Made by a program: the position numbers and the translations under genes. Shown here piece by piece: positions 28,931 to 55,556 of a stretch of DNA of 64,000 nucleotides. Location of the stretch: the sequence record OU509535.1. One strand, written 5' to 3'. How positions within the stretch are numbered: the first letter of the stretch is position 1; every line of letters begins with the position of its first letter. The notes under the pieces were generated by a model. The model had not been told where the DNA came from, did no database searches, and was given only the letters and a program-made list of their open reading frames with translations.

Positions 28931-28960
28931 TTGAATAAACATTTCTCCTTGTGATATAAT
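28931..28960 (+). promoter_or_regulatory. sigma70-type promoter
   Basis: TTGAAT-18 nt-TATAAT with extended TG. Confidence 0.6.
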
Positions 28961-29004
28961 ACTATATGTAAAAGGATTTTACATAAGCACAAGGAGAGTC
29001 AAAG

Positions 29005-29733
29005 ATGATAGATAATTTAGCATTTGCATCCGAAATGGCTAATCAGTTGAACATGAGTAATTTTCAGAGTCTTACGCCAGTGATGGCGGAATATGCTGTT
29101 GCTCATGCCACCTGTGGTGAACAAGTTGGATCAGCAAATTTATTGGCTGATGTATTCAGTACTGTACAAAGTACCCAATACAGTGTTAAAATGTATAGGG
29201 ATAAGTTTGTACAGTTGTATATGCTTGATGTAATAAAAGAAGAACCAGAATGGACTGATTTTATTATTGAACGTAGGATTAGTGGTGTTTCTAATCCAGA
29301 TAAAGATGCAGTACAAGTATTTGATGAAATACTTCAAGATGTATATAGTAATGAACAAAAAAGTCTAAATCAATACAATGTACGTTCTACCAAGACAGTG
29401 CTCGTGGGATTTGATGAAGATGAAGAATATTACTATTTTCGTTGTACTGAAGTAGATTTTAAATACGAAACTCCCAGTACAGTTAAAGTTAAAGAATTTA
29501 CTGAAAAGAGTAAAAACTTCAAAAAACATTCTTCTAATATTAGTAATATAGTTGGTTATAATAAAGATGGTATTGACATATATCAATGGGTACACCCAAA
29601 TAACTCAACTTATACCAGATGTTTAAAGAAACGTTATAATTTAAAACAAGAAGAATCATTTTATTTTAAGATAAAGAAGCATTCCTATCAACGACCTGAT
29701 GAATCAGTGTTACTTGGTATGATTTACTTCTGA
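29005..29733 (+). CDS. Hypothetical protein
   Basis: AAGGAG SD, 242 aa, own promoter and terminator. Confidence 0.8.
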   Translation: MIDNLAFASEMANQLNMSNFQSLTPVMAEYAVAHATCGEQVGSANLLADVFSTVQSTQYSVKMYRDKFVQLYMLDVIKEEPEWTDFIIERRISGVSNPDKDAVQVFDEILQDVYSNEQKSLNQYNVRSTKTVLVGFDEDEEYYYFRCTEVDFKYETPSTVKVKEFTEKSKNFKKHSSNISNIVGYNKDGIDIYQWVHPNNSTYTRCLKKRYNLKQEESFYFKIKKHSYQRPDESVLLGMIYF

Positions 29734-45834: not shown

Positions 45835-46379
45835 AATTAAAAAATGCAGATGTAAAAAACATTAGTACTAAAATTGAATACTTGCATAAGCGTAGAATTG
45901 AACTTGCATATGAAATTAGTACTAAAGCATATAATTTAGTTAAAGGGTTATATGCCGAATATGAAAAAAATTTCAAATATAGTATTTTAAATACACTTCA
46001 ATTCAAACCACAATCTTTTGATAGTTTTGAGAAAGATTTGTTTGGTGGTGGAGGATTCTATAGTACCAAAAAGAAAATTGTACTTGATGTAGTTAATCAG
46101 ACCAATCCAGGTGTTACTAGGGTGATATTTGTTGATGCTTTGTGGTTTAAAGTCAAATATACTATAACCAACGAAAAGGATGATGATTTTATTCATCGTG
46201 CTGATACAGTAGGTCAAATTTTTGTAGATCATAATAAAGACTTTGATTTTTATAAAAAATTCCGTATTATTTCTGAATTGGGTGATATAGAATATGAAGA
46301 TTCAGATTTATCCCGAATTACACGTTGGGAAAGAGAGATTGATAATATGGAATCAATTTTAGCGGATTACAATAAATGA
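45831..46379 (+). CDS. Hypothetical protein
   Basis: ATGA overlap, 182 aa. Confidence 0.75.
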   Translation: MKLKNADVKNISTKIEYLHKRRIELAYEISTKAYNLVKGLYAEYEKNFKYSILNTLQFKPQSFDSFEKDLFGGGGFYSTKKKIVLDVVNQTNPGVTRVIFVDALWFKVKYTITNEKDDDFIHRADTVGQIFVDHNKDFDFYKKFRIISELGDIEYEDSDLSRITRWEREIDNMESILADYNK

Positions 46380-46903
46380 TATATCATTTAACTGAAGAAC
46401 AAAGTACTGAATACTTTAACAATTTAGAAGCAGTTCTGGACTATCATAAAAAAATTCATACAGATGCATGTAATATTTTAAATTCTTGGTATACTTTTTA
46501 TAAACTGAATTTTAATAACCTACCGTGGTATATGAAATTTGGTGTTTTATCATATAAAAAGTTTTTAGCATCTATTGCTAATGATACTGGGTTAGAAATC
46601 AGAAATAAAATGTATCAATATGTAACACCACGTAATATGTCTGGATGGGTTTATAAATTAAAAATTAATAAAATCCAAAAATTAACTGGTATTGATTTAA
46701 GTACCGAAAGTATAAATTTAGTAATTCATGCAATGCATTTTGGTTTACAATATGATAGTATGTATGATTTGTATAGAACATTAGAAAAAATAAAAAAATA
46801 TGGTTCAATTCCATATACTATTGATGAATATGATTTGAAAATTTTCGAACATGTATCATTTTTAGTACAACATTATAATATAGAGAAATATAATGAAGCA
46901 TAA
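46376..46903 (+). CDS. Hypothetical protein
   Basis: ATGA overlap, 175 aa. Confidence 0.75.
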   Translation: MIYHLTEEQSTEYFNNLEAVLDYHKKIHTDACNILNSWYTFYKLNFNNLPWYMKFGVLSYKKFLASIANDTGLEIRNKMYQYVTPRNMSGWVYKLKINKIQKLTGIDLSTESINLVIHAMHFGLQYDSMYDLYRTLEKIKKYGSIPYTIDEYDLKIFEHVSFLVQHYNIEKYNEA

Positions 46904-47363
46904 AACATGGTTAAATATTGCTAAAGCGGTTGCTGAGGAAAGTAAATGTATTTCACATAAAGTTGGTGCAGTAATTGTAAAGAATAACAGGATTCTAAGT
47001 ACTGGGTATAATGGTACAAGTTCTGGTGCAGTTAATTGTTGTGATGCGAATAGTCATTTAATTCATAATAATGAATTTCAAAATTGGGTATCAGATGAAG
47101 CTAAACATGAACATCATGAGTGGAGTAATATTCATGAAATTCACGCAGAAATGAATGCTTTATTGTATAGCTCTCCACAAGAACGACAGGGTGCAACTCT
47201 TTATAGTACAATGCAACCCTGCTATACCTGTTCTAAATTAATTGCAGGAAGTGGTATTACTAATGTAATTTATGAAAAAGAATACCCACGTACACCACCC
47301 GAAGCAATTGAAGTTTTAAAAGATGCTGGTATTACAGTTAATAAATTGTCAGATTTGGAATAA
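46893..47363 (+). CDS. cd: dCMP deaminase
   Basis: SKC...VGAVIV...ILSTGYNG, HAEMNAL, PCYTC. Confidence 0.92.
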   Translation: MKHKTWLNIAKAVAEESKCISHKVGAVIVKNNRILSTGYNGTSSGAVNCCDANSHLIHNNEFQNWVSDEAKHEHHEWSNIHEIHAEMNALLYSSPQERQGATLYSTMQPCYTCSKLIAGSGITNVIYEKEYPRTPPEAIEVLKDAGITVNKLSDLE

Positions 47364-47433
47364 TTATTTTAACATAATAAATGTACTTTTTGAATTATAT
47401 GTAATTAGTATCTTTTGAGTTAAAATAATAAAA

Positions 47434-47465
47434 AAGGAGAACAGCAACGTTCTCCTTAATTTTTT
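47434..47465. terminator. Bidirectional terminator between convergent genes
   Basis: AAGGAGAAC-agcaac-GTTCTCCTT with A-run upstream and T-run downstream. Confidence 0.75.
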
Positions 47466-47468
47466 AAA

Positions 47469-48107
47469 TTATTCTACTGTGACTTCAACAGTATCAGTTT
47501 TGTTTCCATCATTGGTGGTTACAGTTATAGTTGCAGTACCAGTAGCTACATATGAAACTAGTCCAGTACTATCTACAGTACAAACACCCACTGCACTGGA
47601 AGACCATGTAACAGATTTATCGGTTGCATCCAATGGTAGTACTGAGATACTCAATTGTTCAGTACCACCTACAGCACCAGTAAGAGTTTTTGGTGAAACA
47701 GTAACGCTTTCTACATGAACGATTGGTGGTTTTACGTTAGTGCGTCTAAAGATAAATCCACCATTATCCAACTTGACTTTGTTGAGTTGGTAGAGTATAC
47801 TGAATCCCTCGACACCGGTTTTTGGGTCAGATTCTTTGATACAAAAGGTATTTACTGCTAGTGAATCAGCAATATCTTCGTCAGCATCGGAATATTTTAG
47901 TGCTACCAGATTTGAATCGCGGTGAACTAGTCTAATAAATGTATAAACAGTTCCATCTGTGGAAATCAAATCATACACATCAAAAGTTCTTTGTTTGTAT
48001 ACAAATAGGTCGCCAACATGAACTGTACCATTAACATTTGCCGCAGTGACTTTCAATCCATCAACAACAAACGGATAATGGTTTTGTTTTGCGATAACAC
48101 GTGCCAT
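47469..48107 (-). CDS. Ig-like (Big_2) domain protein, probably virion-associated
   Basis: VESVTVSP..L.GAVGGTEQLS..VLP.DATDKSVTWSSS..GV.TVD..G.V.....GTATITVTT.DGNKT; GGGAG SD on - strand. Confidence 0.85.
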   Translation of the reverse strand: MARVIAKQNHYPFVVDGLKVTAANVNGTVHVGDLFVYKQRTFDVYDLISTDGTVYTFIRLVHRDSNLVALKYSDADEDIADSLAVNTFCIKESDPKTGVEGFSILYQLNKVKLDNGGFIFRRTNVKPPIVHVESVTVSPKTLTGAVGGTEQLSISVLPLDATDKSVTWSSSAVGVCTVDSTGLVSYVATGTATITVTTNDGNKTDTVEVTVE

Positions 48108-48206
48108 TATTTTCTCCCTTTTATAAAAACTTGTAAACGTTATTAAATTTATGTTTATTATAAAATTTTATATAACCTTACTATTATTTACCAATTTAGA
48201 GGAAAT

Positions 48207-48803
48207 ATGTTTATTGTACTAAAAGAATTTTTATATAATACATTAATTGCTTTTTCACTTATTTTCCCATCACATGATATTCAACAGAATGTAACTGTAA
48301 ACGATAGTAACGTATTAATTTTTAATACGAAAATAAACGACGAATCAGTACAAAGAGCAGAAACATTATATAAGAAATATAAGTACAAAACCATTTCTAT
48401 TACCTCACCTGGAGGTGATGTGAATTCTAGTTTTGAATTAGCAGTCTTTGCTTCTGACCATAATATTAAAGTTCATGTACCACAGTACTGTGCTAGTGCA
48501 TGTACAGTTATATTTTTTGCTGCTGATAAACAAAACAGGGTTATGGATAAAGATGCTATTATCGCTATTCATAATGTTTCGGTTGTGGCTAATAATGATA
48601 TTTCTGGTAATGAAACCATATCTATCAATACTGCCATGGATTTAATGAAAGATACATCAGAAATCGTAGCATCTATGTATAGTTTATATGCATATGTTGG
48701 TATTCCAGGTGAAATCCTGATGAGAACAAGCACTATGCACGGATCTGATTCTTATCAAATAACAAAAAAACAACTCCAAATGTGGGGCATTTTAGAAAAA
48801 TAA
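48207..48803 (+). CDS. Exported ClpP/crotonase-fold protein
   Basis: Hydrophobic leader, TSPGGDV, CASAC, IAIH. Confidence 0.6.
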   Translation: MFIVLKEFLYNTLIAFSLIFPSHDIQQNVTVNDSNVLIFNTKINDESVQRAETLYKKYKYKTISITSPGGDVNSSFELAVFASDHNIKVHVPQYCASACTVIFFAADKQNRVMDKDAIIAIHNVSVVANNDISGNETISINTAMDLMKDTSEIVASMYSLYAYVGIPGEILMRTSTMHGSDSYQITKKQLQMWGILEK

Positions 48804-48825
48804 ATCTGTACAAGAATATCATTTG

Positions 48826-48834
48826 TGATATAAT
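48826..48834 (+). promoter_or_regulatory. Extended -10 promoter for nadM-nadV
   Basis: TG-a-TATAAT. Confidence 0.5.
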
Positions 48835-48842
48835 AATTAAAC

Positions 48843-48890
48843 AGAGAGTGATGTAGCTCTCTTTTATATAGCTTAGGGAGTACTAAGACA
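48843..48890 (+). promoter_or_regulatory. Two-hairpin 5' leader of nadM
   Basis: AGAGAG/CTCTCT hairpin then CTTAG-GGAGTA-CTAAG enclosing the SD. Confidence 0.5.
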
Positions 48891-49955
48891 ATGAAAGAAA
48901 AAGTTTATGTATATATTGGACGTTTCCAAATTCCACATATTGGTCATGAAGAAGTCCTCAAACATGCAATCAAAATTGCAGATCGTGTTATCATTCAGGT
49001 AGGTTCAAGTGAACTGGCTCGTGATCCAAAAAACCCATTCACGTTTGAAGAACGTAAGTCAGTACTAGAAGAAATTACAAAACGTGTAGCTCAAGATGAA
49101 TGGAATAAAGGTCGAACTGTTAAAATCGATATTATGCCATTACATGATTATGTATATGATAATAATGCATGGCTAAAAGAAGTACAGGATAATGTTAAAA
49201 CATGTACTTCAAGTAATGATATTACTATTACCGGTTGTCGTAAAAATGGTGATACCAGTACTGAATATCTTAACTATTTTCCTCAATGGAAAAATGACTT
49301 CATTAACGAAGTACAAAGTAATGCAAAGGGTACTATTAGTAGTACTGAACTACGCGAAGCTTTTTTTGTCTCTGGTAAAGTTCCAACTGAATTTGTTTCA
49401 AAAGAAACAACAGAATTTCTAGAAAATTTTGTCAGTACTAAACCGGATGTATTCGATAATCTTATTAAAGAATATGAATTCATTAATCGTTATATTGAAC
49501 AAATGAAAGAAGCACTACCTTATGATATTCCATTTTTAACAGCAGATAACATCGTCGTCAGTTGTGGTCACGTTCTTCTTATTCGTAGAAGAACATATCC
49601 AGGAAAAGGATTATTAGCTATGCCGGGTGGATATTTTCAATGTTGGGATGATAAAGACCAGATTGATACTGCAATTCGTGAATTAAAAGAAGAAACTAAA
49701 ATCGATGTACCTGAAAAAGTACTTCGTGGTAATATTGTTAGTGCAACAGACTTTACTGACATGAATAGAAGTCTTCGCTGGCGAATTCTAACTAAAGCTG
49801 TTCATATTCAATTACCTGACGTCACTCTACCTAAAGTTAAAGGAAGTGATGATGCAGAAAAAGCTCAGTGGATTCCACTAAGCGATGTAGAAAAATATCG
49901 TGATCAGTTCTTTGAGGACCATTATTCTATTTTGGCTTCAGTACTGAAACTATAA
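48891..49955 (+). CDS. nadM: Bifunctional NMN adenylyltransferase / ADP-ribose pyrophosphatase (NadM-Nudix)
   Basis: GRFQIPHIGH, KNPF, ISSTELR, MPGGY...DTAIRELKEET Nudix box, SDDAEKAQW, FEDH. Confidence 0.92.
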   Translation: MKEKVYVYIGRFQIPHIGHEEVLKHAIKIADRVIIQVGSSELARDPKNPFTFEERKSVLEEITKRVAQDEWNKGRTVKIDIMPLHDYVYDNNAWLKEVQDNVKTCTSSNDITITGCRKNGDTSTEYLNYFPQWKNDFINEVQSNAKGTISSTELREAFFVSGKVPTEFVSKETTEFLENFVSTKPDVFDNLIKEYEFINRYIEQMKEALPYDIPFLTADNIVVSCGHVLLIRRRTYPGKGLLAMPGGYFQCWDDKDQIDTAIRELKEETKIDVPEKVLRGNIVSATDFTDMNRSLRWRILTKAVHIQLPDVTLPKVKGSDDAEKAQWIPLSDVEKYRDQFFEDHYSILASVLKL

Positions 49956-49984
49956 AGAATTATTACACAGAGTAATAATAAATC

Positions 49985-50030
49985 AGAGAACGTAGTAGTT
50001 CTCTAACTTAAACTAAGGGAGTCTTAGAAA
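49985..50030 (+). promoter_or_regulatory. Two-hairpin 5' leader of nadV
   Basis: AGAGAAC/GTTCTCT hairpin then CTAAG-GGAGT-CTTAG enclosing the SD. Confidence 0.5.
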
Positions 50031-51503
50031 ATGAAAAACGTAAATCCAAATGTAAACTTTATTCTAAATGCCGATTCATATAAAGTTGGTCATCGCAAAA
50101 TGCTTCGCAAACATGTTGATGGTTATTACAGTACTATTGTACCTCGTAAAAGCTCTCCACATAGCAACCATGTAGTTGTGGCTGGTTTGCAATACACAAT
50201 TAATACCTATATCAATATTCAGATTACCAAAGAAGATGTTGATGAAGCTGAAATTGAAATTCGTGAACAAGGTTCGCGTTTTGATAGAACTATTTGGGAT
50301 AAAATCGTCAATGAGTTTGGTGGTAAAGTTCCAGTAAAAATTAGTGCTATTAAAGAAGGTACAGTTGTTCCAGTTCAATCAGTAGTTTGTGTTGTTGAAG
50401 CTAAAGATGAGTTTGCATTTTTGGCTAGTTATATTGAAACTTGTATTCAACGTGGTGTATGGTATAGCAGTACTGTAGCATCTGAATGTCGTGCAATGAA
50501 AAAAATTCTTGCTGATGTAATGCAACGTCATGCTGGTCATAAGAATGTAGATTACCATTTCCATAACTTTGGAGATCGTAGTGCAACTTGTTTTGAACAT
50601 GCATATGTAGCTGGTATGGCACATGCAATTATGTTCAATGGTTCGGATAGTTTAACTTCCAATCGTTATATTAAAGCTCACTATAATACTACCAAAGCAT
50701 ATCTGAGTTCAGTTGACGCTACTGAACATAGCGTTATGTGCAGTAATAGTGATGCTGAACATCGCAATGATTATGGTGCAGCAGTAATGGCGGTAGATCA
50801 TTGGGAAGAACAAGTTACAATGTGGGAAGAAGATGGATTAGGTGTACCAGTAACTTCATGTGTTATTGATACTTATAATGATTATCGCTTTGTCCGTGAC
50901 TTTATCGGTACTAAATTAAAAGACCGTATTGTTGAAATTGGCAAACGAGGTGGTCGCTTTGTTCTTCGTCCTGATTCACGAATTCCTAAAGAAATTTGCA
51001 TTGACGTAATCGAAATTCTAATGGAAAAGTTTGGTTATACTATTAACGAACATGGTTACAAAGTACTACCACCATATATTGGAGTAATTCAAGGTGATGG
51101 TGTTAATTTCGATAGTATTCACGAAATTCTAGATATTCTTGATGAAAAGAAATTATCCCTTGAAAACATTGTATTTGGTTGTGGTACCAAATTGGTTAAC
51201 CCTGAACGTGGTCGTGATCTTTATAGTTGGTCAATGAAAGGTACTGCACAACATGTCGAAGACGAACGTGAATGGCAAGACCTATTCAAAGATCCAGCAG
51301 GTGAACCAGGCAAACGTTCACATAAAGGGCGTGTAGTAACCTGGAAATGCAAAGTATCTGGTAAGATTTTTGTTGATCGTGATGATCTTGATAAAGTTAA
51401 TCATTTCATTGAAAATCTACTTGTACCAATGTATGACTGCGGTAAAATTATGAATTTCAGTACTTTTGATGAAGTTCGTGAGCGTGCTAACGCAGGTATC
51501 TAA
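50031..51503 (+). CDS. nadV: Nicotinamide phosphoribosyltransferase (NAMPT)
   Basis: ADSYKVGH, HNFGDRS, ATEHS, VIDTY, LRPDS, IQGDGV, FGCG, KDP..KRSHKG. Confidence 0.93.
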   Translation: MKNVNPNVNFILNADSYKVGHRKMLRKHVDGYYSTIVPRKSSPHSNHVVVAGLQYTINTYINIQITKEDVDEAEIEIREQGSRFDRTIWDKIVNEFGGKVPVKISAIKEGTVVPVQSVVCVVEAKDEFAFLASYIETCIQRGVWYSSTVASECRAMKKILADVMQRHAGHKNVDYHFHNFGDRSATCFEHAYVAGMAHAIMFNGSDSLTSNRYIKAHYNTTKAYLSSVDATEHSVMCSNSDAEHRNDYGAAVMAVDHWEEQVTMWEEDGLGVPVTSCVIDTYNDYRFVRDFIGTKLKDRIVEIGKRGGRFVLRPDSRIPKEICIDVIEILMEKFGYTINEHGYKVLPPYIGVIQGDGVNFDSIHEILDILDEKKLSLENIVFGCGTKLVNPERGRDLYSWSMKGTAQHVEDEREWQDLFKDPAGEPGKRSHKGRVVTWKCKVSGKIFVDRDDLDKVNHFIENLLVPMYDCGKIMNFSTFDEVRERANAGI

Positions 51504-51510
51504 TATATTT

Positions 51511-51540
51511 TGGAGAGTCATTATGGCTCTCCATTCTTTT
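51511..51540 (+). terminator. Intrinsic terminator
   Basis: TGGAGAGTCA-tta-TGGCTCTCCA then TTCTTTT. Confidence 0.7.
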
Positions 51541-51566
51541 TAATTAAAGTAATAAAGGTATATAAT

Positions 51567-51743
51567 GTGTTTATTGGTTTTAAAATAGTTATTATCTTCT
51601 TTATATGGTTTATTACATATCAAATAATTGAAGAAATCAGTACTAATTTCTCTTCAGATAATATCTTAGTAGACGTTTGTTTATTATCGATTGCAGTACT
51701 GGGATTTTTGATCATACCATTTATATTTTCATATTTTATATGA
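51567..51743 (+). CDS. Small membrane protein
   Basis: GTG start after AAGG; two hydrophobic segments. Confidence 0.5.
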   Translation: MFIGFKIVIIFFIWFITYQIIEEISTNFSSDNILVDVCLLSIAVLGFLIIPFIFSYFI

Positions 51744-51749
51744 AAAATG

Positions 51750-51778
51750 TTGACATTTTTTTCTTCATAAGATATAGT
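51750..51778 (+). promoter_or_regulatory. sigma70-type promoter
   Basis: TTGACA-17 nt-TATAGT. Confidence 0.75.
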
Positions 51779-51811
51779 ATAGATATCAACAATTAATAAC
51801 GGATATCAAAA

Positions 51812-52078
51812 ATGTTCCAACATCTTTTGGATTTTTTCTGTACCGTAAACATTGAAAAACAAGCTAAGTTCATTATTGCAGAACTGGTATGGTTTTACTT
51901 AGGTGGCCTGGTAATTACAATGTGTGCATTTTTACATAGTGATATTAATCTTGGTATTTCCTATGCAAAAAGTGAGAATAAATCATCATTACTACTCAAG
52001 TTTATTAGATGTTTATTGTACTTAGCGTATATCTTATATATTGTTGGATTTTTTGGTGTATATTATGTAATTCATTAG
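51812..52078 (+). CDS. Small membrane protein
   Basis: Two hydrophobic segments. Confidence 0.7.
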   Translation: MFQHLLDFFCTVNIEKQAKFIIAELVWFYLGGLVITMCAFLHSDINLGISYAKSENKSSLLLKFIRCLLYLAYILYIVGFFGVYYVIH

Positions 52079-52088
52079 GAATCGATTG

Positions 52089-52826
52089 ATGATTAGTACT
52101 AAATTCATTAAAAAAGCTGGTGATAAAAGATTACTAATCATTTCTGGAAATGGATTGTCAATAGAGAGTGGTTTTGATTTATATGATATTCCTGATAATT
52201 TTCAGATAAATGATGTATGTAATATTGCCAGTTTAGGTACAAAATATCACGTAGTTCATTCTTATTATAATACTCTTAGAGTTAAATTAAAAGATATTGA
52301 ACCAAACGAAATGCATTACTATATTAAATCATTACAAGATGAGTATGGTGATAACTTTTTACACATGACCAGTAATGTAGATGATTTATATACAAGAATT
52401 GGTGGCACTGAATTAAAATTGCATGGTAATATTAAAGAGGTTATAGAAAACTACACCGCTGATGGTTCTGAAATAGAAATAAAAGAATTAGGTTATGAAC
52501 CATATATTCCATGTAGTGGTATTTTTTCTAAACCCGGTGTTACATTAATTGGTGAGTTCCATAGTTATTTTTATGGATATAAAACCCCAATTTATGAAGA
52601 ACGAAATGAAATACTAAAATCATTAAATGAAAATGATACTGTAGTAGTAATTGGAAGTTCTGATTCAGTACTGAAATGGAGCCATTTAATAAATGAGAAA
52701 TGTTACACAGTACTAATCAATATAAGAAAAAATGAAAACGATCATCGTTTCAATGAACGAATTTATAAATCTTGTTCCAAATCTGTATTAGATTTATCTG
52801 GAATAATTTCAAAAAGGATGATATAG
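52089..52826 (+). CDS. Divergent Sir2/sirtuin-family protein
   Basis: ISGNGLSIESG, TSNVDDL..R.G, KLHGNI, KPGVTLIGE, VVIGSS. Confidence 0.8.
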   Translation: MISTKFIKKAGDKRLLIISGNGLSIESGFDLYDIPDNFQINDVCNIASLGTKYHVVHSYYNTLRVKLKDIEPNEMHYYIKSLQDEYGDNFLHMTSNVDDLYTRIGGTELKLHGNIKEVIENYTADGSEIEIKELGYEPYIPCSGIFSKPGVTLIGEFHSYFYGYKTPIYEERNEILKSLNENDTVVVIGSSDSVLKWSHLINEKCYTVLINIRKNENDHRFNERIYKSCSKSVLDLSGIISKRMI

Positions 52827-53380
52827 TGGAAAAAATTGATTTCGGTAAAAGAAGTACCAGAGCCGATTTTGCTTTTTGTTGGATTTTTGCCAGAGATTGT
52901 ACTCCATACTCTGGATATGATGATCAACTTGGAATTGATAAAGTAAATTTAGTACTAGCACAATTACGTTTTGATGGTTGCATTGGGGCGTGTGGTGGTA
53001 TGGTGGAAAGTGATGATAAATCATTAGAAGAAGCTGTACAGCGTGAAGTACTGGAAGAAATTGGTTATACTGTTGATTTAACACATTTAAAACCACTTCT
53101 AAGTTTGCGTTTACCATCAGGCAGCCATTGTCATAGCTATAGTTATGAAGTTGATTACAATGAATTACAAAGCATTAGAGATGGTGCTTATAGAGGAATG
53201 CATTTCAATCCAGAATGTGCTGGTGTGAATCTTTTACATATTTCAAGATACACAAAAGGTTATGGAAATGAATGTGGATATAATGTATTATTAGAACAAC
53301 ACTGGAGTGGTACATCAAAAGAAGAATTTATGTACCTTGTAGAGACAGAAAATCTATTAATTAGTTATTTGAAGGAATGA
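52826..53380 (+). CDS. Nudix hydrolase
   Basis: Nudix box GGMVESDDKSLEEAVQREVLEEIG; GTG start after AAGGA. Confidence 0.85.
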   Translation: MEKIDFGKRSTRADFAFCWIFARDCTPYSGYDDQLGIDKVNLVLAQLRFDGCIGACGGMVESDDKSLEEAVQREVLEEIGYTVDLTHLKPLLSLRLPSGSHCHSYSYEVDYNELQSIRDGAYRGMHFNPECAGVNLLHISRYTKGYGNECGYNVLLEQHWSGTSKEEFMYLVETENLLISYLKE

Positions 53381-53712
53381 TAATGGGATACCAGTTATTT
53401 TTAGATGATATTCGTGACCCATCAAAATATTATAGTACTGAAATGGTACTATGTAGATCTTATGATGAAGCTGTCAAATATGTAGAAGAACATGGAATTC
53501 CAGAATTTATCAGTTTTGACCATGACCTTGGAGATACTTCTGATAATGAAAAAACTGGTTATTCATTTGCTAAATTTTTGATTGATTATATGATTGATAA
53601 TGGTATCAGTACTGAATTCAAATATAATATTCATAGCTCAAATCCAGTAGGTGCAGATAATATCGATTCTTATCTAAAAGCTGGTTTTAAATATCTAAGA
53701 GAAAATATGTAA
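53377..53712 (+). CDS. Cyclic-phosphate-processing receiver-like domain protein
   Basis: LFLDDIRDP, ISFDHDLG, TGY, IHSSNPVG. Confidence 0.75.
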   Translation: MIMGYQLFLDDIRDPSKYYSTEMVLCRSYDEAVKYVEEHGIPEFISFDHDLGDTSDNEKTGYSFAKFLIDYMIDNGISTEFKYNIHSSNPVGADNIDSYLKAGFKYLRENM

Positions 53713-54035
53713 TGAGTATTAGTAATCATATTTTTGCATGTTTTATTAGTATATGCATATGTTCTGTTGTTGGTGGATTGTGGTATAATTCAATGAGGTA
53801 CGAAAAACACAATATTAGATATAATTCAGTTAAAGTTGTTGGTATTGGTCAATGTTCTAATAAAAGAAAAAGTTCGAGTGCCGAGTGTGCTTTTTGGTAC
53901 AAAGATGGAAATTCTACGCAATTTGCAATTTCAGATAATCCAGTTTCAATTGGTCAAATTGTTTATCAAATGTGCTGGACAGAAAAGGCTCGTGGTGATA
54001 GATGTTATGTAAATTACCAAACGAGTAAGCAGTAA
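53712..54035 (+). CDS. Membrane-anchored hypothetical protein
   Basis: N-terminal TM, Cys-containing periplasmic part. Confidence 0.7.
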   Translation: MSISNHIFACFISICICSVVGGLWYNSMRYEKHNIRYNSVKVVGIGQCSNKRKSSSAECAFWYKDGNSTQFAISDNPVSIGQIVYQMCWTEKARGDRCYVNYQTSKQ

Positions 54036-54110
54036 AAAAGTTGTATTTTAGCAGTTCTAAATACATATGAGAGTCTAAAGATACTCTCCCCTAACAAATA
54101 AGGATATTTT

Positions 54111-55556
54111 ATGTCGAATTATCTACTAGACACAAACATTGTTTTGGCAGACCCACAGTCAGTTGTTGCATTTGATGGACATACTGTAATTATTCCATTC
54201 ACAGTACTACAAGAACTGGATAATATCAAATCAAAAACACTTGATATTTCTAAAGATGCCAGAGTAGCAATTCGTTTAGTTGAAAGTATTATTAAAGATT
54301 CTTCATATGAAGATATTAGTATTAATGGTGTTGATTTAACAAAGACCCATCGTTTTCTTAGTCCAGGTAGTAAACTACGTATTGTCACAGAAGAACAAGT
54401 AAATAAACTAATTCATGATAAGGAACTTGAGTTAGATTATAAATCCCTGATCGAAAGTACTGTACCGGATGATAAGATTATTCTTTCCGCAGCAGCGACT
54501 GATTCAGTTTTGGTTAGCCGTGATATCAACGCCCGCCTGAAGGCTATGAGTTTTGGTATTGAAGTGCAAGATTACCGCCACGATAAGGTAATCGACGATA
54601 CCGATTACATGCATAATGGGTCTCATGAATTAGATTTTGATTTCTGGAAAACCTTAGAAACAATTGATGGAATTGATATCACAAGTAATCAGGAAGGCAA
54701 GCGTTTATATCATTATATTCCAGTACTACAAATCGAACACCTAATGCCAGAAAATCTATATCCAGGTGATTACATCTATGACAACGATGAAGGTGATGTA
54801 TTATTTGTATATCATGGTATTGCAGATCGTGAAATGCAGGACGGTAGTACTGAAGGAGTTGCTTATTATAAATTTGAAGATATTGGCAAATCCAAAGCAA
54901 TGAAACTAAAAGCATGGGACATTAAGCCTAAGAATCTTCATCAGGCAATGTGTATGCAAGCACTAATGGATAATGAAGTAGAATTGGTAATTATTCTTGG
55001 TCCAGCAGGGTCTGGTAAAACTCTTCTAACTACAGCATGTGCATTAGAACAAACAATGGAAAAACCAGCATACAACCAAATTGTATATACTCGTTCACAG
55101 GAAGATTTGGGGCGTGATACTGGATTTTTACCTGGTAATTTGCATGACAAACTAGCTCCGTGGTGTGGTGCAATTTTTGATAGTTTAGATTACTTACACA
55201 AAGACGATAAAGATCCGAAAGGAAGTATTGAATATATTTTCGAAAAACAACTTATTACTCTACAAAGTCTAAACTATGTTCGCGGGCGTTCTTACCAAAG
55301 TACTTTTTTGATCTGTGATGAGTATCAAGATCTGACTGCACATATGAGCAAGTCTTTGACTACTCGTATTGCACAGACTTCAAAGAAAGTTGCATTGGGG
55401 AACCTCAAACAACAAGACTCAAAATATCTAACAGCAAATAGTAGTGGTCTAACATATTTGGTTGAAATTATGAAACATTATTCTAACTGTCGAATTATTC
55501 AGTTAGAGGGTGTACAACGCGGTGGGCTGGCTGAGTACGCAGAAGAAAATATGTAA
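54111..55556 (+). CDS. phoH: PIN-PhoH ATPase/RNase (PhoH2 type)
   Basis: PIN LLDTN, VLQELD, DDKI, SRDIN; P-loop GPAGSGKT, GFLPG, RGRS, DEYQ. Confidence 0.92.
   Translation: MSNYLLDTNIVLADPQSVVAFDGHTVIIPFTVLQELDNIKSKTLDISKDARVAIRLVESIIKDSSYEDISINGVDLTKTHRFLSPGSKLRIVTEEQVNKLIHDKELELDYKSLIESTVPDDKIILSAAATDSVLVSRDINARLKAMSFGIEVQDYRHDKVIDDTDYMHNGSHELDFDFWKTLETIDGIDITSNQEGKRLYHYIPVLQIEHLMPENLYPGDYIYDNDEGDVLFVYHGIADREMQDGSTEGVAYYKFEDIGKSKAMKLKAWDIKPKNLHQAMCMQALMDNEVELVIILGPAGSGKTLLTTACALEQTMEKPAYNQIVYTRSQEDLGRDTGFLPGNLHDKLAPWCGAIFDSLDYLHKDDKDPKGSIEYIFEKQLITLQSLNYVRGRSYQSTFLICDEYQDLTAHMSKSLTTRIAQTSKKVALGNLKQQDSKYLTANSSGLTYLVEIMKHYSNCRIIQLEGVQRGGLAEYAEENM

Follow-up and report, generated by a model that had tools for sequence, protein, structure and literature searches.

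We have found that the leaders of nadM and nadV, two nicotinamide adenine dinucleotide (NAD) salvage genes carried by the 64,000-nucleotide stretch of sequence record OU509535.1 analysed here (the window, to which all positions given without a locus number refer), are versions of one conserved RNA structure that is specific to these two genes. The window is 100% identical to the OU509535.1 record of a Klebsiella phage, 98% to K64-1 and 91-93% to Muenster and RaK2, and the phage is a RaK2/K64-1-like Klebsiella jumbo phage of the genus Alcyoneusvirus, whose genomes are ~347 kb long (347.5 kb in this case). The nadM gene (also called natV; 48891-49955, on the plus strand like all features below unless noted) encodes a bifunctional nicotinamide mononucleotide (NMN) adenylyltransferase/Nudix hydrolase of 354 aa with the Pfam domains CTP_transf_like and NUDIX, and has annotated homologues in K64-1, Muenster and KVP40. 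In turn, nadV (50031-51503) encodes a nicotinamide phosphoribosyltransferase (Nampt) of 490 aa with the Pfam domains NAMPT_N and NAPRTase. Both genes constitute the NARP2 pathway, which is found in ~1% of phages, rebuilds NAD+ and defeats NAD-depleting defence systems such as Thoeris, DSR or SIR2-HerA; when cloned in E. coli the operon is toxic, overproduces NAD+ and drains phosphoribosyl pyrophosphate (PRPP) (bioRxiv 10.1101/2024.02.11.579819). Literature searches for a leader, hairpin or riboswitch of nadV, nadM or natV returned no description, and the element is a previously uncatalogued family of structured RNA within the known kind of structured mRNA leaders. It is very likely a control element for NAD salvage, and the existence of one conserved structure specific to both genes favours the coordinated post-transcriptional control of this pathway that had been proposed in a sequence-only reading of this DNA.

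All the leader elements claimed in that reading for nadM and nadV are where it placed them, and the minimum-free-energy folds of both leaders are exactly the two hairpins described there. In the nadM leader, hairpin 1 (48843-48862; -9.2 kcal/mol, z -2.7) had been given six base pairs; the hairpin is present, but its stem has seven pairs, including an added U-G pair, and the loop is therefore GAUGUA. It is followed by an A/U-rich and G-poor linker of 9 nt (48863-48871) and by hairpin 2 (48872-48887; -4.8 kcal/mol, z -2.6), in which five pairs (CUUAG/CUAAG) close the 6-nt loop GGAGUA, so that the Shine-Dalgarno sequence GGAG (48877-48880) lies in the loop and the stem ends 3 nt before the ATG at 48891. 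The nadV leader has the same arrangement, with hairpin 1 at 49985-50004 (7-bp stem, loop GUAGUA; -9.3 kcal/mol, z -3.2), a linker of 8 nt (50005-50012) and hairpin 2 at 50013-50027 (CUAAG/CUUAG, 5-nt loop GGAGU; -3.3 kcal/mol, z -0.5), whose loop holds GGAG at 50018-50021 and whose stem also ends 3 nt before the start codon, an ATG at 50031. The GGAG contexts of the two leaders are GGAGUACUAAG and GGAGUCUUAGA. It is by comparison, that is, by the covariation and the model specificity presented below, and not by single-sequence folds, that chance is excluded for these leaders.

Regarding specificity, the covariance model R1 scored 62.4 bits on the nadV leader (49978-50033) and 48.5 bits on the nadM leader (48836-48893), against a next score of 15.1 bits elsewhere in the window with filters off and of 15.7 bits elsewhere in the whole phage genome, which contains only these two copies, both at NAD genes. 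When 759 kb of DNA from other phages was scanned, every R1 match above ~23 bits was a nadM or nadV leader; a match of 22 bits (L122:15138-15200 in our numbering of loci) was discarded as spurious, being located within a coding sequence and having no start codon. A GGAGN loop with at least four flanking pairs was present at 44 of 60 NadM/NadV starts and at only 11 of 393 starts of other open reading frames (ORFs) with GGAG (Fisher p 3.6e-37). Furthermore, wherever the exact 15-mer of the nadV hairpin 2 stands directly before a start codon in the IMG/VR database, NadM or NadV is encoded downstream. For a second hairpin-2 variant, an 18-mer, NadV followed in 57 of 67 cases, three others being cut at contig ends and seven being at about chance level. 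A hairpin upstream of phoH (54069-54088, GAGAGU/ACUCUC, 8-nt loop) had been regarded as a relative of hairpin 1, a kinship we could not maintain, as it gives no R1 match, its loop does not fit and it is not followed by a hairpin 2; the phoH gene itself (54111-55556) encodes a PIN-PhoH fusion of 481 aa.

The conservation of the structure becomes clear outside the genus. Both leaders are 100% identical in seven Alcyoneusvirus genomes, save for one A-to-G change that preserves a G-U pair. In a more distant RaK2-like group, with NadM proteins 55-62% identical (Eneladusvirus, Mimasvirus, Asteriusvirus, Munch-like phages, XaC1 and Erwinia phages), the two hairpins precede both nadM and nadV in most genomes, the nadV leaders of Munch-like, EJP2 and Hallingskeid phages having a variant hairpin 2. 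The stem of hairpin 1 has been repeatedly rewritten among RaK2-like phages (AGAGAG, CAAAGC, CAAGGU, GCCGAU, GAAAGC, GACAGC) and its loop stays G-N-N-G-U-A or a 5-nt version of it. In an alignment of 29 RaK2-like leaders hairpin 1 was 88.7% paired, with double compensatory changes in six of its seven pairs and a covariation score of 0.436, compared with 0.177 in shuffling controls, which keep phylogenetic relatedness in, and with 0.15 or less in slid controls, which remove the effect of relatedness. As for hairpin 2, we aligned 65 unique leaders from phages and bacteria in a fixed window and without selection, and this region was 75% paired (43% when shuffled), with a covariation score of 0.72 (0.20 when shuffled) and four to six pair types at each of the five pairs. 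In the alignment of leaders from related phages suggested in the sequence-only reading, both stems covary and the structure is conserved in homologous leaders.

The same plan was found before nadM and nadV in IMG/VR loci gathered with a NadM profile (33-41% identity), where a stable hairpin 1 with loops such as AUAGA, AGAGA, AGGGA or GGGGU is followed by an A/C-rich linker and by a hairpin 2 of 3-7 bp around GGAGN that ends at the start codon. Phage carriers include Ralstonia phage RSP15, Stenotrophomonas phage Yut3, Menderavirus and many uncultivated phages. In addition, chromosomal nadM-nadV operons of Caulobacter, Erythrobacter sp. SD-21, an alphaproteobacterial metagenome-assembled genome (MAG) and several Comamonadaceae have the leader before both cistrons, and an acidobacterial MAG has it before nadM. 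The hairpin-1 loop of the bacterial leaders is GGAGU or GGAGA, like the loop with the Shine-Dalgarno sequence, or else ACGGA or G-N-N-G-A. These bacterial operons are flanked by housekeeping genes (panC, a phosphoadenosine phosphosulfate reductase gene, tRNA genes) and have no accessory gene in common; in two alphaproteobacterial genomes tRNA genes lie ~250-350 nt upstream of the chromosomal nadM leaders (L143:2171-2241 and L144:2093-2163).

Hairpin 2 was detected in 154, hairpin 1 in 127 and both in 114 of 169 unique NadM/NadV leaders, with 108 distinct 5' arms for hairpin 1 and 71 for hairpin 2; in this detection G-U pairs were allowed and consecutive pairs were the sole requirement, and some of the unique leaders may have wrong start codons. 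The linker is A/C-rich and 0-25 nt long (median 10). The median energy is -7.8 kcal/mol for hairpin 1, which is stable, and -2.2 kcal/mol for the weak hairpin 2, which ends 0-3 nt before the start codon in 144 of the 154 leaders that have it. Hairpin-1 pentaloops conform to R-N-N-G-A, with a purine at position 1 in 72, G at position 4 in 66 and A at position 5 in 60 out of 79, and 93 of 873 hairpin-1 pairs are G-U. Because the loops are conserved and asymmetric while the arms vary and G-U pairs are frequent, these patterns indicate that RNA, and not duplex DNA, is the object of selection.

Within the window itself, the difference between the two hairpin-2 stems carries less information than had been supposed. 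Their apparently reciprocal exchange had been taken as a case of structure kept while sequence differs, but it is not strong covariation: the stems differ in one central pair (U-A in nadM, A-U in nadV) and look exchanged because the CU..AG flanks are self-complementary. This single flip, as well as the 6-nt loop of the nadM hairpin 2, coincides with an AGTACT site (48879-48884) included in that hairpin. AGTACT occurs 166 times in the window, a 13-fold excess over the 12.5 +/- 3.6 expected and, given its abundance in the genome, the hairpin-2 difference between nadM and nadV may reflect this genome-wide bias more than leader function. The palindrome, another copy of which lies at 49940-49945, is present 945 times in the 347.5-kb genome (L286-L292), or 2.7 per kb, rising to 5.2 per kb in the first 50 kb, and often takes the form CAGTACTG; its density is 1.8-4.6 per kb across the sampled RaK2-like genera and near zero in other phages.

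The position of the leaders within the transcript was also considered. A promoter scan revealed a sigma-70-type promoter upstream of nadM (48807-48834; TGTACA, 16 nt, TATAAT, with an upstream TG forming an extended -10; 10 of 12 matches) that ends 8 nt before hairpin 1. The predicted start (~48840-48842) lies 1-3 nt before the hairpin, so hairpin 1 should be the very 5' end of the nadM mRNA. Most of the RaK2-like relatives examined, though not XaC1, have TGnTATAAT at a distance of 7-9 nt upstream of hairpin 1 in their nadM leaders. The Munch-like nadM leaders (L010, L105, L111, L112) contain a direct repeat of the hairpin-1 loop with its closing G, (G)AUGUAG, 6-7 nt; the additional copy immediately precedes the hairpin-1 stem, where transcription is predicted to start. 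Downstream of nadV, a terminator scan identified a hairpin of 10 pairs followed by a T-run (51511-51533), which is probably the end of the nadM-nadV transcript. With a promoter before nadM, none predicted for nadV and this terminator-like hairpin after nadV, both genes are probably read as one early transcript in which each cistron has its own leader. The spacer between the genes contains a further hairpin (hairpin 0, 49959-49979; eight A-U-rich pairs, loop ACAGA, in the fold of 49956-50050), which may enclose a weak -10-like element; at its place Mimasvirus and Eneladusvirus (L008, L009) have a different hairpin with a TATAA-like loop sequence preceded by TG, possibly an internal extended -10 promoter. 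Elsewhere in the window, the gene starting at 29005 has an extended -10 promoter like that of nadM, TTGTGATATAAT, followed by a 5' hairpin and GGAG and lacking a hairpin 2 (~28935-29004).

Considering these data, the leaders most likely function as a dedicated translational operator for NAD salvage (NARP2), given that the restriction to two genes of one pathway and the repeat before each cistron favour gene-specific control over a generic aid to expression. In the mechanism that we propose, the weak hairpin 2 would by itself present the Shine-Dalgarno sequence and allow efficient translation. A trans-acting effector would recognise the two similar purine-rich loops and clamp hairpin 2, which would make the Shine-Dalgarno sequence and the start codon unavailable to the 30S subunit, and the presence of one leader copy per cistron would permit the joint adjustment of both enzymes. 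We favour a protein as this effector. The most economical candidates would be NadM or NadV, in an autogenous control like that of T4 gp43, and feedback by one of these proteins on its own mRNA via the leader is the specific version we tentatively prefer on the basis of gene distribution, since no other protein goes with the element in all the phages and bacteria and overproduction of the pathway is harmful. Two similar loops at a flexible distance would suit a dimeric protein.

Other candidates for a regulator were discarded. A gene of ~172 aa between nadM and nadV of other RaK2-like genera is absent from this phage, has no Pfam domain and matches only a PHROG of unknown function; the small ORFs found after the motif in a few contigs share no relationship with one another and belong to no family, and the neighbours of the bacterial operons are housekeeping genes. 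In one locus (L126), an ORF of 78 aa is translationally coupled to nadV. The phage-encoded repressor contemplated in the sequence-only reading does not fit with the finding of these leaders in operons of bacterial chromosomes, and an anti-Shine-Dalgarno pairing of the 3' arm of hairpin 1, CUCUCU, with AGGGAG was dismissed, that arm not being conserved in sequence among relatives.

Several observations weigh against control by NadM or NadV or against the operator in general. To the best of our knowledge, neither NadM nor Nampt is a known RNA-binding protein. Hairpin 2 is so weak that alone it should favour initiation and not impede it. There is no sign of a genome-specific co-evolution of RNA and protein, as within one genome the nadM and nadV leaders disagree at loop positions 2-3, and the R-N-N-G-A pattern could just as well reflect a conserved pocket for a small molecule or a stable loop fold. 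Only hairpin 2 is evident in the T4-like phage KVP40 and in a Slopekvirus. The promoter scan of the window found no recognisable promoter before the nadV leader, and hairpin 1 is therefore not always 5'-terminal. Finally, the invariance of the leaders within Alcyoneusvirus adds little, as the flanking genes are 98-99.5% identical, the clpP-like gene and nadV being 98-99% identical.

The effector could instead be a metabolite, a possibility we rate somewhat below autogenous control. The hairpins would jointly bind a compound of the NAD pathway (NAD+, NMN, ADP-ribose, nicotinamide or PRPP) that stabilises hairpin 2 over the Shine-Dalgarno sequence and the start codon, in an architecture reminiscent of guanidine-II, with its two hairpins, or of NAD+-I, with its tandem domains. 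A riboswitch is the usual explanation for gene-specific 5' motifs at bacterial metabolic genes, and the element behaves as self-contained and portable, standing only before the genes of one pathway in bacteria and phages with no shared accessory gene. A loop pattern common to very distant lineages and a variable linker between two similar hairpins, as in guanidine-II, point in the same direction, and few NAD+ riboswitches are known and further ones can be expected (PMC7749635). However, besides the Shine-Dalgarno sequence there are very few invariant nucleotides, internal loops, junctions and supported tertiary pairings are absent, the two loops are not complementary to each other, and the hairpin-1 loops may have 5 or 6 nt and vary at three of five positions. 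A pairing of the hairpin-1 loop with the tail, which would have made a pseudoknot, had been suggested for nadV; in 36 leaders the longest complement of this loop downstream averaged 4.14 against 4.08 in shuffled sequences, that is, chance level. Neither was there any match to a riboswitch family in Rfam, with no hit at E<=10 on 46000-54000, none at the gathering score in the whole window and nothing relevant in 11 related loci. The most ambitious form of this alternative, in which the element would be a third and by far the most widespread class of NAD-pathway riboswitch, a minimal aptamer of two pentaloop hairpins for NAD+ or a breakdown product, seems to us rather doubtful. If true, bacteria would use it to tune nadM-nadV, and phages would switch on their NAD-reconstituting counter-defence exactly upon the depletion of NAD+ by host immunity.

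It is also conceivable, though in our opinion unlikely, that the leader senses nothing and is a constitutive cassette, in which hairpin 1 shields the mRNA from 5'-end-dependent decay and hairpin 2 keeps the Shine-Dalgarno sequence exposed and insulated; that such a cassette simply travels with horizontally mobile genes is unlikely to the same degree. 5'-terminal stem-loops are established mRNA stabilisers, and in the majority of nadM leaders from RaK2-like phages the -10 box is separated by 7-9 nt from hairpin 1, which lies at the predicted 5' end; moreover, hairpin 2 is too weak to block the ribosome and the early gene at 29005 has a similar layout. Nevertheless, a constitutive role leaves unexplained why nadM and nadV alone carry the element among hundreds of genes per genome, why every cistron of the bacterial nadM-nadV operons has its own copy and why the hairpin-1 loop is conserved despite more than 100 stem replacements. 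Hairpins that stabilise mRNA resemble ours in that a stable hairpin lies a few nt from the predicted 5' end of the nadM transcript, and differ in that here the loop sequence is conserved, a Shine-Dalgarno hairpin is attached and the element is gene-specific.

We consider very improbable that the target is GGA or GGAG as such, recognised in loops by a general regulator like CsrA or by a RegB-like endoribonuclease that cuts the GGAG of early phage mRNAs. As in T4 RegB sites, the Shine-Dalgarno GGAG of an early phage mRNA is unpaired in the hairpin-2 loop, some lineages also have GGA in the hairpin-1 loop, and RegB alone cleaves small RNAs if GGA is unpaired and the last G constrained (PMC3014915). 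By contrast, the 3' context of the window leaders does not conform to the strong RegB consensus GGAGRAYARAA (PMC3014915), and the element is also found in phages unlike T4 and in Alpha- and Betaproteobacterial chromosomes. CsrA, proposed earlier, is hardly compatible with the leaders: CsrA/RsmA requires at least two GGA sites, as a rule located in hairpin loops and with one at the Shine-Dalgarno sequence, and this phage has GGA only in hairpin 2, its hairpin-1 loops being GAUGUA and GUAGUA; most hairpin-1 loops of the family lack GGA, and the carriers include lineages with other hairpin-1 loops. In any case, a global factor would leave the restriction to two genes unexplained. Least credible of all is that the hairpins act at the DNA level as operators for a dimeric transcription factor of NAD metabolism such as NrtR. 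It is true that both are inverted repeats downstream of a promoter, and that NrtR controls nadM-nadV in Synechocystis and prs-nadV in Shewanella (PMC2330246). Its operator, however, is a DNA palindrome of 21 bp whose arms are conserved and whose core is GT-N7-AC (PMC2330246), a core that inspection of the sequence did not find in the window hairpins, and in the leaders the arms vary freely, G-U pairs are frequent and it is the asymmetric centre that is conserved, the opposite of a protein-DNA palindrome, so that the covariation pattern largely refutes this alternative.

Returning to the translational operator, we have compared the leaders with known systems. Guanidine-II (mini-ykkC) riboswitches act at the ribosome-binding site and consist of two small hairpins joined by a variable linker, their loops being conserved and similar to each other and their closing pairs G-C-rich. 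Our leaders share the two small hairpins with similar loops and G-C-rich closing pairs, the variable linker and the location, but guanidine-II has invariant tetraloops in place of mutually non-complementary loops of 5-6 nt with another sequence, Rfam gave no guanidine-II match and the genomic context is NAD salvage and not guanidine detoxification. Autogenous operators are a further parallel: in the ThrRS operator of E. coli two similar hairpins serve a dimeric enzyme. In the T4 gene 43 operator a hairpin with important loop bases precedes the ribosome-binding site and the gene's own product represses translation (PMC3014915). The operators of this type (gp43, gp32, ThrRS) have in common with the leaders that a hairpin whose loop is conserved adjoins the ribosome-binding site. 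The element described here differs in serving two enzymes, in phages and bacteria, and in having the Shine-Dalgarno sequence in a loop. It also differs from the promoter-stem-loop cassettes (PeSL), which are repeated in many copies through T4-type genomes between unrelated genes, as it has two copies in 347.5 kb, both at NAD genes. The flanking consensus of T4 RegB sites is absent from the leaders, which reach far beyond T4-like phages and into bacteria.

With respect to the two known classes of NAD+ riboswitches, both are, like our element, 5' leaders of NAD-pathway genes, although they belong to other genes than nadM and nadV and to other taxa. NAD+-I (nadA motif) consists of two tandem, similar stem-loop domains, the second with the ribosome-binding site. 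These tandem stem-loops are bulged, with a ACANCCCC bulge (PMC7297122), whereas the hairpins of the leaders are unbulged and have no Rfam match. In NAD+-II (pnuC motif) the ribosome-binding site is likewise involved, but its P1, P1a and pseudoknot have no counterpart in the leaders, and the covariance model of this class gave no match. The likeness to NAD+-II and to preQ1-I, a small H-type pseudoknot, that had been noticed in the leaders was consequently abandoned, since there is neither an Rfam match nor a pseudoknot signal.

A leader private to nadM and nadV in phages and bacterial chromosomes offers a concrete handle on the control of the costly NARP2 pathway. If the effector is a metabolite, the element would help with the long-noted scarcity of NAD+ riboswitches (PMC7749635); with NadM or Nampt in this role, one more metabolic enzyme would be added to those that repress the mRNA encoding them. 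In either case this is a new family of structured RNA, with covariation enough for an entry in an RNA database and for the annotation of NAD-salvage genes.

Some additional features of the locus can be mentioned. In RaK2, Muenster and KP13-7 an extra ORF, absent from the phage of the window, lies between the nadM stop codon and the nadV leader (L001:2775-3782, L002:2775-3800 and L006:4810-6234; the corresponding site in the window is 49956) and leaves the leader intact; it is annotated as a homing endonuclease in Muenster and RaK2 and as hypothetical in KP13-7. The nadM coding sequence of the window is only 87-90% identical to those of RaK2/Muenster/KP13-7 and phiKp_21, in the midst of flanking genes that are 98-99% identical, which suggests a tract of recombination or co-conversion. 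A gene for a ClpP-like protease (48207-48803) stands before nadM, and further upstream a bidirectional terminator-like hairpin (47434-47457) separates the convergent genes for a dCMP deaminase (46893-47363) and for an immunoglobulin (Ig)-domain protein (47469-48107, minus strand). Directly 3' of the NAD-salvage genes there is a gene for a SIR2-family protein (52086-52826), so that a sirtuin-like, NAD-consuming enzyme adjoins the genes that rebuild NAD. A near-consensus sigma-70 promoter (51750-51778; TTGACA, 17 nt, TATAGT) precedes an ORF of 88 aa and this SIR2-family gene (region 51812-52826).

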